A stretch of 64,000 nt of DNA. Origin: Macrostomum lignano (lineage: Eukaryota). Location: assembly GCA_002269645.1 (NCBI GenBank), contig NIVC01001905.1:1-64000 (forward strand). Reading direction: 5' to 3'. Of this stretch, positions 40,501 to 54,111 are shown piece by piece. Within the stretch, counting starts at the first letter, position 1. Each line of letters starts with the position of its first letter. Position numbers and translations under genes: made by a program. The notes beneath the pieces were generated by a model. The model made no database searches. It was not told the DNA's origin and worked only from the letters and a program-made list of their open reading frames with translations.

Positions 40501-43500
40501 ACATGGATCAAAGAATAGAATGAATTGCTAATCTAGCCTACATGGATCAAAGAATAAAATGGATTGCTAATCTAGCCTACATGGATCAAGGAATAGAATG
40601 GATTGCTAATCTAGCCTACATGGATCAAAGAATAGAATGAATTGCTAATCTAGCCTACATGGATCAAGAAATAGAATGGATTGCTAATCTAGCCTACATG
40701 GATCAAAGAATAGAATGAATTGCTAATCTAGCCTACATGGATCAAGAAATAGAATGGATTGCTAATCTAGCCTACATAGATCAAAGAATAGAATGGATTG
40801 CTAATCTAGCCTACATGGATCAAGGAATAGAATGGATTGCTAATCTAGCCTACATGGATCAAAGAATAGAATGAATTGCTAATCTAGCCTACATGGATCA
40901 AGAAATAGAATGGATTGCTAATCTAGCCTACATGGATCAAAGAATAGAATGGATTGCTAATCTAGCCTACATGGATCAAGAAATAGAATGAATTGCTAAT
41001 CTAGCCTACATGGATCAAGAAATAGAATGAATTGCTAATCTAGCCTACATGGATCAAGGAATAGAATGAATTGCTAATCTAGCCTACATGGATCAAGAAA
41101 TAGAATGGATTGCTAATCTAGCCTACATAGATCAAAGAATAGAATGGATTGCTAATCTAGCCTACATGGATCAAGAAATAGAATGGGTTGCTAATCTAGC
41201 CTACATGGATCAAAGAATAGAATGGATTGCTAATCTAGCCTACATGGATCAAGGAATAGAATGGATTGCTAATCAAGGGGATCAAATATTCATGTAGGAA
41301 ATTAGGATAGAACCGCAGATTTCCGAAGTTCATGTTTTAACCGATAATTTTTGCAGCTTCGAAGTCAAGGAGTTCGAGTTCAACATTCCACATGAGGACA
41401 TCGAATTTCGGGAGTGCGTTCTGCGTGGCAGAAGACGGAAAGTCTACAGGTGAGTGAATGAGAGGTCGGGAGTTCTATTCAACAATGTATTCGTATTAGA
41501 AAGAATGCATTTACGAGCTACGGGCGCCCATGGACGAAGTATTTAAGCCAAGGAAATGCTTGGTTTAAGTTAAGTGCTCAGGCAACCTTCAAAATGTAGC
41601 GTTTTACAGGACTATAAACCAGCAACCCACTGCCTCATCAATCAAATTATCGATTAACAAATAAAACCATGGATCAATTTAAAAGTCGCTTAATCAAACA
41701 GTAAACCAAGCAATCAATCAATCAATCAATACAACACTCTATCAATCAAAAAATCATTCAATCAATCATTCAATCAATCAATTTTTCAATCAATCAATCA
41801 TTCAATCTATCTATCTATCTATCTATCTATCTATCTATCTATCTATCTATCTATCTATCTATCTATCTATCTATCTATCTATCTATCTATCTATCTATCT
41901 ATCTATCTATCTATCTATCTATCTATCTATCTATCTATCTATCTATCTATCTATCTATCTATCTATCTATCTATCTATCTATCTATCTATCTATCTATCT
42001 ATCTATCTATCTATCTATCTATCTATCTATCTATCTATCTATCTATCTATCTATCTATCTATCTATCTATCTATCTATCTATCTATCTATCTATCTATCT
42101 ATCTATCTATCTATCTATCTATCTATCTATCTATCTATCTATCTATCAATCAATCAATCGATCAATCAATCAATAAATCAATCAATCAATCAATCAATCA
42201 ATCAATCAATCAATCAATCAATCAATCAATCAATCAATCGATCAATCAATCAATCAATCAATCAATCAATCAATCAATAAATCAATCAATCAATCAATCA
42301 ATCAATCAATCAATCAATCAATCAATCAATCAATCAATCAATCGATCAATCAATCAATCAATCAATCAATCAATCAATCAATCAATAAATCAATCCCCCC
42401 AAACCACCGCAGGGGCCACTGGCACGGGGAGGTGACAATCCACGCCTACGAGAGCCTGGACTCCGAGGAGCGCAGCAAATTCTGGGAGGAGATCGCCAAG
42501 CTCAGCCTCATCAGACACGAGAACATTTTTCTATTCATGGGCGTATCCATGGACCCGCCGACTTCGCGATTCGCCGTGGTCACCTGCCTGCGCAAAGGCG
42601 TCACCCTTCACGAGACTGTCCACGTGCGCAAAGAGAAACTGGGTGCCAGCAGGCGCCTGTCAATCATTCGCGACCTGGCGCAGGCGGCCGGCTACCTGCA
42701 CGCCAAGAGCATCGTGATTCGCCGGTTCAACTCCAGCAACGTGTTTCTGGAGCCCAGGGCCAAACTGTCGCTGCAGGATTATTCTGTGATTACAGAGGAG
42801 GAAGAGGACAGGTCAGTGTCCGGGATATCTGGCCGAGATGATGGATTGCTAGTCTAGCCAATGCAATCGCTGATGTAGTTTGATGGAGTGAGTTTCACAT
42901 CTCCGACACTTCATATCTCTGACACTTTACATCTCCGACACTTCATATCTCCGACACTTTACATCTCCGACACTTTACATCTCCGACACTTTACATCTCC
43001 GACACTTCATATCTCTGACACTTTACATCTCCGACACTTCATATCTCCGACACTTTACATCTCCGACACTTCACATCTCCGACACTTTACATCTCCGACA
43101 CTTTACATCTCCGACACTTCACATCTCCGACACTTCACATCTCCGACACTTCACATCTCCGACACTTCATATCTCCGACACTTCACATCTCCGACACTTC
43201 ACATCTCCGACACTTCACATCTCCGACACTTCACATCTCCGACACTTCACATCTCCGACACTTCATATCTCCGACACTTCACATCTCCGACACTTCATAT
43301 CTCCGACACTTTACATCTCCGACACTTTACATCTCCGACACTTCACATCTCCGACACTTCACATCTCCGACACTTCACATCTCCGACACTTCACATCTCC
43401 GACACTTCACATCTCCGACACTTCATATCTCCGACACTTCACATCTCCGACACTTCATATCTCCGACACTTTACATCTCCGACACTTCATATCTCTGACA

Positions 43501-52500: not shown

Positions 52501-54111
52501 TTGGTGAAGCTTCACGTTGGTGGAGTGTCCGGATGTTGAAGCTTTGCCAATTGGTAAAACTTCAGTTTGATGAAGTGTCCGGATGTTGATCTTTGCCAAT
52601 TGGTGAAGCTTCACGTTGGTGGAGTGTCCGGATGTTGATCTTTGCCAATTGGTGAAGCTTCAGTTTGATGAAGTGTCCGGATGTTGATCTTTGCCAATTG
52701 GTGAAGCTTCACGTTGGTGGAGTGTCCGGATGTTGAAGCTTTGCCAATGGTGAAGCTTCACTTTGGTGGAGTGTCCGGATGTTGATCTTTGCCAATTGGT
52801 GAAGCTTCACGTTGGTGGAGTGTCCGGATGTTGAAGCTTTGCCAATTGGTGAAGCTTCACGTTGGTGGAGTGTCCGGATGTTGATCTTTGCCAATTGGTG
52901 AAGCTTCACGTTGGTGGAGTGTCCGGATGTTGAAGCTTTGCCAATTGGTGAAGCTTCAGGTTGATGGAGTGTCCGGGTGTTAAAGCTTTGCCAATTGGTG
53001 AAGCTTCGCGTTGGTGGAGTGTCCGGATGTTGATCTTTGCCAATTGGTGAAGCTTCACGTTGGTGGAGTGTCCGGATGTTGAAGCTTTGCCAATTGGTAA
53101 AACTTCAGTTTGATGAAGTGTCCGGATGTTGATCTTTGCCAATTGGTGAAGCTTCACGTTGGTGGAGTGTCCGGATGTTGATCTTTGCCAATTGGTGAAG
53201 CTTCAGTTTGATGAAGTGTCCGGATGTTGATCTTTGCCAATTGGTGAAGCTTCACGTTGGTGGAGTGTCCGGATGTTGATCTTTGCCAATTGGTGAAGCT
53301 TCACGTTGGTGGAGTGTCCGGATGTTGATCTTTGCCAATTGGTGAAGCTTCACGTTGGTGGAGTGTCCGGATGTTGAAGCTTTGCCAATTGGTGAAACTT
53401 CAGTTTGATGAAGTGTCCGGATGTTGATCTTTGCCAATTGGTGAAGCTTCACGTTGGTGGAGTGTCCGGATGTTGAAGCTTTGCCAATTGGTGAAACTTC
53501 ACTTTGATGAAGTGTCCGGATGTTGAAGCTTTGCCAATTGGTAAAAATTCAGTTTGACGAAGTGTCCGGATGTTGAAGCTTTGCCAATTGGTGAAGCTTC
53601 GGGTTGAGCACAATCGCTACTTCTAAGCCTCACGCCAACCCCTCAGCATCATCATGTTTGAGGTGTGCTGCGGTCGCTACCCGTTTGGCAAATGCGACAG
53701 ACTGCGCTACATGGAGCACATCTGCCGCGGTGAGAGAGACCCGATGCACGACCTCAGAGCCTCGGAAAGCATCAAGGTATGATTTTTGCTTGGCTATGAT
53801 TAAAAAGAGAATCTATTAATTACTTATTGATTTGAACGAAATCATTCAATAAAATTCCAATTACTCAGAGTCTCATTACTGACTGCTGGAGTCACGATCC
53901 ACTTTATCGACCGGAATTCAGTCAGATTAATTTGGCACTCAACAATCGGGTAAGTTTATCAGTTGGATCGGTTGTCGCTTATATTAAGAGACTTTTTATA
54001 CGAGCGTACGTTATTTTTCACCCCTCTGAACTGCAGGAGGCCACGCACCTGCGGCACAGCTCCTCCGAGCCAGAGAACCTGCACCGGCATGCCAAGATCG
54101 GTTTCTTTTAG
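37582..54111 (+). CDS. Raf/KSR-like (TKL) pseudokinase with low-complexity polyQ/S/A N-terminus, 8 firm coding exons
   Basis: Phase-consistent exons ~37582-38834, 38924-38999, 41357-41449, 42413-42811, 48132-48263, 53647-53776, 53869-53949, 54037-54111. Possible first exon 36599-36648. Kinase: [71 protein letters not shown]. The WHGEVxI and RHEN.LFMG motifs are KSR/Raf-like. Confidence 0.88.
39015..39537. repeat. Intronic 28-bp minisatellite (CCCAGCAACTGAGGATCTGGGAGGCTGG)n
   Basis: Starts ~15 bp after donor 39000. Confidence 0.95.
40195..41275. repeat. Intronic 39-bp minisatellite (ATGGATCAAGAAATAGAATGGATTGCTAATCTAGCCTAC)n
   Basis: Direct; ~27 copies; core shared with the 54282-55080 array. 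Confidence 0.95.
41710..42395. repeat. Compound tetranucleotide microsatellite (ATCA)n-(ATCT)n-(ATCA)n
   Basis: Direct; ends ~17 bp before acceptor 42412. Confidence 0.97.
42893..43726. repeat. Intronic 16-bp minisatellite (CATCTCCGACACTTCA)n
   Basis: Direct; ~52 copies. Confidence 0.95.
44184..44622. repeat. (TCTG)n microsatellite
   Basis: Direct. Confidence 0.97.
45700..45945. repeat. ~51-bp G-rich tandem repeat, 4-5 copies
   Basis: Unit aatgtgaggggtgtggggagtgggggtgttttatcgcagcgaaggggct(a). Confidence 0.85.
46255..47715 (-). CDS. SGMS: Sphingomyelin synthase family protein, intronless, no SAM domain; probable start ATG 47469 (404 aa)
   Basis: SMS motifs D1 PLPD, D2 [24 protein letters not shown]3 [11 protein letters not shown]4 [21 protein letters not shown]; about 6 TM segments. 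Nested antisense in pseudokinase intron 42812-48131. Confidence 0.92.
   Translation of the reverse strand: MREMKIKRQQRETESKVKNYDSRSEHSRISESLWLFLARFEFNQTNFTKRTRSAGGHCTRLGSSSCSWHQPRRVSRGCSSGTMTATAAPATGPDASSAASTEPASTSGEAPFQQSNVGYCKQCSDALIDFSSNGYHPLSTAGADDSDEGKPSATLISMPTSSRCQASNGCEDDVVEESALEELAAKPPSDFWRAFLALLFMFTGMTMTAVSLIFVHERVPSSPPLPDVLLTRVTHIPWALDVCEYLLIVTLAATYITAFLHRHRWVVLRRIFFMIGMLFSYRSVTIFVTALPNPSPTYYCEPKQSGSLGFEQIFARLLRLGSGGGFSINGNHVYCGDYIFSGHTAILTLGYLVIREYTSPRLTVLHWTSWIVSLTGVGFLVLSHGHYTIDIVLGYWITTRLWWMYHTAANFAGQRTHGYFRQACWWRAFLFFEADRRYSYGPLPYEFDLPWPTRIRAAAAAAHQLARCRHSAAELAAQTCHKLGLL
48310..53602. repeat. 5.3-kb intronic 49/50-bp satellite (~105 copies) with higher-order structure
   Basis: Unit AGCTTTGCCAATTGGTGAAGCTTCACGTTGGTGGAGTGTCCGGATGTTGA with gatcttt and aaacttcagtttgatgaag variants; fills intron 48264-53646. 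Confidence 0.97.

Follow-up and report, generated by a model that had tools for sequence, protein, structure and literature searches.

The stretch analysed here (the window) comprises positions 1-64,000 of the forward strand of Macrostomum lignano contig NIVC01001905.1, and all coordinates below refer to it. It encodes a kinase-like protein in which much of the catalytic machinery is replaced, and this raises the question of which family the protein belongs to and what it might do without catalysis. A first-pass annotation, made from the DNA letters, had described it as a catalytically dead Raf/KSR-like kinase, and possibly as an undescribed pseudokinase subfamily. We find that the protein is a KSR3 orthologue, a new and so far unnamed member of a known family. 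The gene at 36599-54111 (+) is probably one of at least two KSR3 genes in M. lignano, encoding a member of the kinase-dead third branch of RAF/KSR proteins which, by homology, would act as an allosteric activator of RAF.

A nine-exon gene for a pseudokinase

The gene consists of nine coding exons with intact frames and canonical splice sites, and its product is 762 amino acids (aa) in length. The translation is identical at 762/762 positions to GenBank PAA62737.1 (BOX15_Mlig004540g1), a 762-aa M. lignano "hypothetical protein"; the gene model is already in public annotation, where it carries no functional name. The locus had previously been delimited as 41357-54111. The six exons in that interval (exons 4-9) are real, as they have AG/GT boundaries and join into one continuous reading frame, 302 codons long and closed by a stop, but 41357 is an internal splice acceptor whose phase requires two bases from an upstream exon, and the gene begins at 36599. 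Three further coding exons lie upstream of 41357. Two of these, a large low-complexity exon and a 76-nt exon, were revealed by conservation with a second M. lignano locus (L001, described below). A direct join of the large upstream open reading frame (ORF) to the exon at 41357 was ruled out by misfitting splice phases, and it was this misfit that led to the search for, and identification of, the 76-nt exon. Residues 1-16 of PAA62737.1 map to 36599-36646 by tblastn on the window. The low-complexity N-terminus noted earlier is likewise real, but it corresponds to exon 2 and so lies outside 41357-54111. The exons are as follows:

36599-36648 (+): exon 1, ATG, aa 1-17, beginning MSYKPVPKLSARQDSV; located by tblastn of PAA62737.1, GT donor
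37582-38834 (+): exon 2, aa 17-435, long low-complexity Ser/Gln-rich N-terminal region; AG/GT boundaries; conserved in patches with L001 (tblastn E 1e-33)
38924-38999 (+): exon 3, aa 435-460, 76 nt; tblastn against L001 E 5e-9, phases fit both neighbours
41357-41449 (+): exon 4, aa 460-491, pre-kinase acidic stretch and degenerate P-loop; 93 nt also in the paralogue
42413-42811 (+): exon 5, aa 491-624, beta3, alphaC/dimer interface, IRRFNSSN and QDYS
48132-48263 (+): exon 6, aa 624-668, activation segment and TPPE; 132 nt also in the paralogue
53647-53776 (+): exon 7, aa 668-711; 130 nt also in the paralogue
53869-53949 (+): exon 8, aa 712-738; 81 nt also in the paralogue
54037-54111 (+): exon 9, aa 739-762 and stop, C-terminal 14-3-3-type motif

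For the C-terminal 98 aa there is also an older prediction from M. lignano (P0024, UniProt A0A1I8IX77), which is identical to this protein through HAKI and then reads ..ALIGELLER rather than ..GFF; the divergent end may represent a different allele, copy or model end.

The motifs of the kinase region were located as follows (residue numbers are those of the 762-aa protein):

41367-41390 (+): pre-kinase acidic stretch KEFEFNIP, exon 4
41421-41444 (+): LRGRRRKV in place of the Gly loop, aa 482-489
42432-42443 (+): VTIH at beta3, aa 498-501
42480-42542 (+): alphaC and dimer interface with W515 and R525, exon 5
42717-42740 (+): IRRFNSSN in place of HRDLKxxN, aa 593-600
42774-42785 (+): QDYS in place of DFG, aa 612-615
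48172-48183 (+): TPPE in place of APE, aa 638-641
54049-54087 (+): C-terminal 14-3-3-type motif, aa 743-755

Each of the degenerate motifs reported in the first-pass annotation (LRGRRRKV, VTIH, IRRFNSSN, DYS and PPE), as well as the C-terminal motif, is therefore present. The proposed RxxxSxP spacing of the latter also holds, with R744 at -4 and P750 at +2 relative to S748. Following alignment with BRAF (the BRAF sequence used was checked and is 100% identical to residues 448-766 of PDB 7mfd_A), H501 occupies the position of the beta3 Lys, R595 that of the HRD Asp and N597 that of the catalytic-loop Lys, while the Gly loop retains one Gly. The earlier statement that every catalytic element is replaced went slightly too far. 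The beta3 Lys, the HRD Asp and the Gly loop are lost, but three residues survive: D613 as the Asp of DFG, N600 as the Asn of the catalytic loop and E517 as the Glu of alphaC.

The fold framework is intact over the six exons, as had been claimed. The Pfam PK_Tyr_Ser-Thr profile, 258 positions long, aligns with aa 477-732 from its position 3 to its position 255 (E-value: 3.6e-30), and exon 5 alone matches the Pfam kinase family with an E-value of 1.1e-13. An AlphaFold2 model of the kinase domain (39 relatives in the alignment) has a mean predicted local distance difference test score (pLDDT) of 87.8 and a predicted template modelling score (pTM) of 0.85. Its best PDB matches are BRAF kinase domains (target-normalised TM 0.85-0.89, at approximately 25% identity in the structural alignments), among them 5hid/5hi2, a BRAF mutant with a beta3-alphaC deletion. 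The protein is clearly a pseudokinase, with a RAF/KSR-type fold that is intact and catalytic machinery that is disabled.

Placement in the KSR3 family

KSR3 was named by Chessel et al. (2023, Nat Commun 14:3970; PMC10322840), with the Paracentrotus lividus protein as its founding member. As described there, KSR3 proteins are catalytically inactive and KSR-related, lack the CC-SAM and Pro-rich domains and have remodelled P-loop, VAIK, HRD and DFG motifs. Most non-chordate animals have KSR3: it is listed for cnidarians, placozoans, echinoderms, hemichordates, arthropods, priapulids, annelids, molluscs and flatworms (Schmidtea), and chordates, insects and nematodes have lost it; RAF and KSR1 were found in all metazoans examined in that study, including Schmidtea (PMC10322840). 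Over-expressed echinoderm, hemichordate and cnidarian KSR3 were shown to activate RAF/ERK allosterically and independently of RAS, an activity abolished by an Arg-to-His change at the dimer interface, and KSR3 was likened to those oncogenic BRAF mutants, activated or kinase-impaired, that transactivate a partner RAF (PMC10322840). ERK activation by KSR3 is abolished by mutation of the C-terminal 14-3-3 site, of the pre-kinase acidic motif or of R364. In most KSR3 proteins the beta3-alphaC region is three residues shorter than in BRAF/KSR1, and the family carries either Leu or Trp where BRAF has K499 and shows S361-K-I-R364 as its dimer-interface string (PMC10322840). Sea-urchin KSR3 depends on an N-terminal C1 domain, and its C37/40S C1 mutant loses as much activity as a dimerisation mutant (PMC10322840). 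As this family was named in 2023 with a flatworm already listed, and PAA62737.1 was already in GenBank, the suggestion of an undescribed pseudokinase subfamily is not upheld.

When the protein was compared with PDB sequences using phmmer, the best match was fly KSR (8bw9_D, E-value: 1.8e-43; PDB 8BW9 is the fly KSR-MEK-CNK-HYP complex), followed by KSR1/KSR2 (approximately 1e-33 to 1e-32) and BRAF/CRAF (approximately 1e-27 or weaker). The fly KSR alignment extends into the C-terminal tail, where it is aligned with LARSPSHPVNLSRSAE, indicating that a 14-3-3-type tail is common to KSR and not a Raf peculiarity. The site that had been called Raf-type is therefore present, but that label is too narrow, since the site is common to RAF, KSR1 and KSR3.

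A word-indexed protein search found three relatives only; alone, this would have suggested an orphan, and an exhaustive HMMER search (1.8 billion representatives) was needed to reveal the family. This search ranked proteins of approximately 530-810 aa with 36-43% identity above the canonical KSR1-type proteins (approximately 900 aa, approximately 33% identity). The closest relatives come from molluscs (abalone, limpet, whelk and scallop), arthropods (scorpions, a millipede and an ostracod), echinoderms (sea urchins and a starfish), a soft coral and flatworms (a monogenean and schistosomes). Among them are XP_009044189.1, the Lottia KSR3 in the list of Chessel et al. (PMC10322840), and Diadema proteins with E-x-G-x-x-G and VLIQ, the motifs given for sea-urchin KSR3 (PMC10322840).

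In a table of aligned motifs, the KSR3-type set has His, Tyr, Gln or Asn in place of the beta3 Lys, no Asp at the HRD position, no DFG, an alphaC of the form FW..(I)RHEN and the tail [KR]RHSSSEP..L.R. This remodelling of the ATP site, with loss of the Gly loop, beta3 Lys, HRD Asp and DFG, is seen in approximately 50 KSR3-type sequences. In contrast, the canonical KSR1 group keeps GxGRFGxV, VA[VI]K, HKDLKxKN and DFG, and has RSPSHP..LSR at the place of the KSR3 tail. The earlier remark that KSR has Arg at beta3 is correct for vertebrate-type KSRs, the only ones with Arg in this table, but most of the canonical KSR1 proteins there retain Lys. In parasitic flatworms the KSR3 C-terminal motif is weaker (KHKTNSVP, RRKNSDP), and their MDYS/TDYS resembles the M. 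lignano QDYS; four proteins from Cichlidogyrus, Schistosoma and relatives (P0010, P0020, P0021 and P0032) also carry very large kinase-domain insertions after the activation segment. RefSeq names KSR3 orthologues variously as B-raf-like, A-Raf-like, KSR1-like, KSR2-like, "dual specificity protein kinase splB-like" or uncharacterized, with differences even inside one genus (Haliotis), and none is named KSR3.

A neighbour-joining tree was built from 287 columns of 106 kinase domains (51 KSR3-type, 53 KSR1-type, human BRAF and one more distant TKL kinase). A KSR3-type clade containing both M. lignano copies and Lottia XP_009044189.1 was recovered in 410/500 bootstraps, apart from the KSR1-type proteins and BRAF; a position outside Raf/KSR had been named beforehand as the outcome that would speak against the first-pass annotation. 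The two M. lignano proteins pair in 500/500 bootstraps and are joined with monogenean and schistosome proteins in 387/500. Molluscs adjoin the flatworm subclade, matching the expectation from the species tree.

Several individual features also agree with this placement. The distance from the beta3 residue to the alphaC Glu is 15 residues, as compared with 17-18 in most KSR1 proteins and 17 in BRAF, so that the beta3-alphaC stretch is 2-3 residues shorter than in BRAF/KSR1. W515 occupies the BRAF K499 position, and S522-L-I-R525-H corresponds to sea-urchin S361-K-I-R364. Of the KSR3-specific donor residues compared, W515, S522, I524 and R525 match and Y503 and L523 do not. The RAF side-to-side dimer residues are kept as R525, L531, F532 and M533 (equivalents of BRAF R509, L515, F516 and M517). 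Two acidic residues, E465 and E467 (K464-E465-F466-E467), directly precede F468 at the BRAF W450 position; in Diadema KSR3 (..SLSEWTIP) the counterpart of E467 is the Glu that comes just before Trp. At the C-terminus, R744-H-S-S-S748-E-P750 provides a predicted 14-3-3 site, its RHSSSEP string being conserved across the KSR3 family and in the paralogue.

The second locus lies on contig NIVC01000128.1 and its product (P0001, BOX15_Mlig000150g1) is truncated at the N-terminus in the annotation. We considered whether it could be the orthologue from another species, but a cluster look-up identified both loci as M. lignano; the L001 gene is a paralogue or homeologue. The two loci are colinear, with exons at 70-86% nucleotide identity and introns that do not align. 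The kinase-domain exons of L001 are 93, 402, 132, 130, 81 and 81 nt in length, as compared with 93, 399, 132, 130, 81 and 75 nt here. The proteins are 74.5% identical, and their dead motifs show little or no difference. By the Nei-Gojobori method over 302 codons, non-synonymous divergence (dN) is 0.155, synonymous divergence (dS) is 1.49 and dN/dS is 0.10 (bootstrap 0.05-0.15), a ratio that is approximate because dS is near saturation, but far from the value of about 1 that would have indicated neutrality. Codon third positions are 53% identical and first and second positions 83-87%. Strong purifying selection on both copies is clear, and the gene is not a decaying pseudogene.

The N-terminus and the proposed mode of action

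The earlier report of no RBD, C1 or CC-SAM was borne out by three kinds of search. Pfam analysis of the 762-aa protein detected the kinase only, with no domain in aa 1-476 and no RAS-binding domain (RBD), C1 or CC-SAM, while the same scan detected SAM_KSR1_N, SAM_KSR1 and C1 in canonical KSR1 controls (SAM in P0046 and P0052). No match to a C1 regular expression was found in any of the six frames of the window. A hidden Markov model (HMM) built from 51 KSR C1 domains gave a best E-value of 0.24 in six-frame translations of the window and L001, its weak matches being in a tandem repeat on the opposite strand, as compared with 2.8e-17 for a control KSR1. An exon-split C1 upstream of the annotated ATG may formally exist. 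C1 is also absent in Lottia KSR3 and in the other mollusc and flatworm KSR3 proteins examined, and it is found at the very N-terminus in scorpion, millipede, echinoderm and cnidarian KSR3. C1 is thus not universal in the family.

Three short N-terminal elements recur in other KSR3 proteins: the pre-kinase acidic stretch listed above and the first two of the following features.

38012-38065 (+): amphipathic basic F..W motif, aa 161-178, recurring in molluscs and arthropods
38783-38812 (+): [ST]WP-containing motif, aa 418-427, recurring in other KSR3 proteins
37598-37615 (+): RAVSSP, aa 23-28, candidate basophilic/14-3-3-like site by pattern match
37652-37669 (+): RSRAHS, aa 41-46, candidate basophilic/14-3-3-like site by pattern match

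In most KSR3 proteins, from cnidarians through echinoderms, arthropods and molluscs to flatworms, the [ST]WP core precedes the WHG of the kinase domain by approximately 65-75 residues. It reads LC[AS]TWPP.G in many of them (P0005-P0037); Haliotis has RCATWP, which fits RxxTxP, and M. lignano lacks the upstream Arg. The founding paper's main text (PMC10322840) nowhere contains the string TWP. When an equivalent of the sea-urchin N-terminal 14-3-3 site S84/S87 was sought, loose candidates only were found, for which conservation could not be shown.

The earlier proposal, in which the protein is further degenerated than KSR and serves Raf/MEK as a scaffold or as an allosteric regulator, fits the published KSR3 experiments (PMC10322840), although for M. 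lignano it is made by homology only. By analogy with sea-urchin, hemichordate and cnidarian KSR3 (PMC10322840), the M. lignano protein would not phosphorylate anything. Phosphorylation of S748 would allow a 14-3-3 dimer to bridge this residue to the C-terminal site of a catalytic RAF, and the two kinase domains would pair side to side through the R525 surface. The short beta3-alphaC loop would hold KSR3 in an "alphaC-in" donor state, switching RAF on allosterically, and MEK and ERK would in turn be activated without RAS-GTP. Because such a protein would be constitutively competent, the amount of signal would be set mainly by where and when the gene is transcribed and by N-terminal phosphorylation. 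Membrane contact, if needed, might be supplied by the C1 of RAF itself or, more speculatively still, by the N-terminal amphipathic basic motif.

Several observations weigh against this interpretation. The C1 domain required in sea-urchin KSR3 is absent; Y503 stands at the BRAF L485 position, where most KSR3 proteins have Arg; L523 replaces sea-urchin K362; and the equivalent of BRAF W450 is Phe (F468). In addition, the tree is neighbour-joining, not maximum likelihood, with BRAF as its single RAF sequence, and the selection estimate is affected by near-saturated dS. The missing C1 is the main uncertainty: membrane contact could come from RAF or another motif, or the subclass could work differently, possibly as a damper.

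A KSR3 member lacking C1 might act as a brake, forming unproductive cytosolic complexes with RAF, MEK or 14-3-3, or as a weak, context-dependent modulator. The loss of activity of the sea-urchin C37/40S mutant, which matches that of the dimerisation mutant (PMC10322840), would lead one to expect this of a protein with no C1 encoded anywhere in the window or L001, and at Y503 and L523 the protein departs from residues that KSR3 needs for full activity, as judged by mutation. However, the Lottia protein and other mollusc and flatworm orthologues are also C1-less and conserved, which makes the C1-less form an old, maintained state, and the protein keeps a set of donor-side features (the short beta3-alphaC stretch, W515, S522, I524, R525, the acidic residues and the C-terminal 14-3-3 site). 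A brake or weak modulator is improbable. The protein could also be a canonical KSR1/2 or RAF orthologue that has merely decayed further in the M. lignano lineage, given that fly KSR is its best solved-structure match by sequence and that RefSeq calls its relatives KSR1-like, KSR2-like, B-raf-like and A-Raf-like. Neither group accommodates it. As regards KSR1/KSR2, there is no SAM_KSR1 or C1, HKD and DFG are replaced by IRRFNSSN and QDYS, and the tree separates the protein from the 53 canonical KSR1-type sequences as well as from BRAF; as regards RAF, Pfam finds no RBD or C1, catalytic residues are lost, and the phmmer match to BRAF/CRAF is 1e-27 or weaker against 1.8e-43 for KSR. Moreover, the dead motifs, the short beta3-alphaC stretch and the RHSSSEP tail also occur in echinoderms, cnidarians, arthropods and molluscs that have a canonical KSR1. 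This origin is very unlikely and already contradicted by the present data. Least credible of all is a functionless, decaying duplicate whose motif losses are the product of drift. The many lost catalytic residues, the satellite-swollen introns and the presence of at least two genomic copies are what such a pseudogene might display, but the nine intact exon frames and canonical splice sites, a paralogue that keeps the exon structure and substitutions with the low dN/dS and third-position identity given above, and the conservation of the same substitutions across phyla already contradict it.

We tentatively suggest that the KSR3 proteins of flatworms and molluscs make up a subclass without C1. 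In place of this membrane-binding, cysteine-rich domain they would use an N-terminal module composed of the amphipathic basic F..W motif and the [ST]WP motif (approximately 70 residues ahead of the kinase domain), and they would activate or tune RAF independently of C1; we consider this possible but doubtful. If it were true, a regenerating flatworm could have a transcription-driven, RAS-independent ERK switch.

Reading of raw sequence was enough here to pick out a true pseudokinase. With the assignment, a "hypothetical protein" of M. lignano, a transgenic regeneration model, receives its correct family name, and an explicit KSR3 label is useful given the inconsistent RefSeq names. The locus alone opens no long-standing question. 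It goes beyond the published description in a single point, namely that spiralian KSR3, including both M. lignano copies, lacks the C1 found necessary by the founding study, and M. lignano is a convenient place for asking whether KSR3 works without membrane anchoring of its own.

Genomic surroundings and comparison with known systems

The window is eukaryotic and rich in tandem repeats. The KSR3 introns consist largely of such repeats, which yield many spurious ORFs in a mechanical ORF list:

41713-42395: (ATCT)n microsatellite and related 8- and 12-nt units
42894-43726: 16-mer, 52 copies
44183-44623: (TCTG)n
48308-53600: 49-bp unit, approximately 107 copies (5.3 kb)

A 39/42-bp satellite with the core GGAATAGAATGGATTGCTA[AG]TCTAGCC flanks the kinase-domain exons on both sides (40193-41274 and 54370-55079), and a fragment of its core follows the exon 5 donor (approximately 42830-42860). 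The satellite recurs (approximately 79% identity) at L001 3759-4366, in a different relative position. The intron between exons 5 and 6 contains a nested gene at 46255-47715 (-), an uninterrupted 486-aa ORF that is sphingomyelin-synthase-like (PAP2_C, E-value: 9.6e-24). L001 has the same arrangement, with a 410-aa PAP2_C gene at 13889-15121 (-), indicating that the nesting predates the duplication. The upstream neighbours are:

1991-3757 (-): DUF229 protein, E-value 4e-114
6351-7720 (-): exon fragments of a calcineurin-like metallophosphatase (PP1/PP2A type)
11218-13134 (-): CSRNP_N-domain protein with a 24-nt coding repeat (SQSPSVTR, approximately 27 copies)
16060-16488 (-): Arf-family GTPase exon, E-value 1.7e-48

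Among known systems, BRAF resembles the M. lignano protein in being the best structural match of the model and in sharing the conserved dimer residues and an RSASEP-like C-terminal site, but the M. lignano protein lacks the RBD, C1 and catalytic residues of BRAF. KSR1/KSR2 provide the best solved-structure match by sequence (fly KSR, 8BW9), have the strings WHGEV, RHEN..LFMG and YLHAK in common with it, carry a C-terminal 14-3-3 site at the same position and are themselves non-catalytic partners of RAF and MEK. They differ in having CC-SAM and C1 domains, in keeping GxGxxG, HKDLKxKN and DFG (most invertebrate KSR1 proteins also retain the beta3 Lys) and in forming a separate clade.

The closest likeness is to KSR3. 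In comparison with the sea-urchin protein, that of M. lignano is without the N-terminal C1 needed there. It also has a long (approximately 460 aa), Ser/Gln-rich N-terminus, VTIH rather than VLIQ at beta3, Tyr instead of Arg at the position of BRAF L485 and PPE rather than APE, and it is encoded in a genome with two diverged copies. With KSR3 it shares a dead RAF/KSR-type domain with a remodelled P-loop and no beta3 Lys, HRD Asp or DFG, the lack of CC-SAM and Pro-rich regions, a non-chordate host and the same clade, together with a shorter beta3-alphaC stretch, Trp at the BRAF K499 position, the S-x-I-R-H dimer-interface string, an acidic residue directly before the kinase-domain aromatic and a C-terminal 14-3-3 site.

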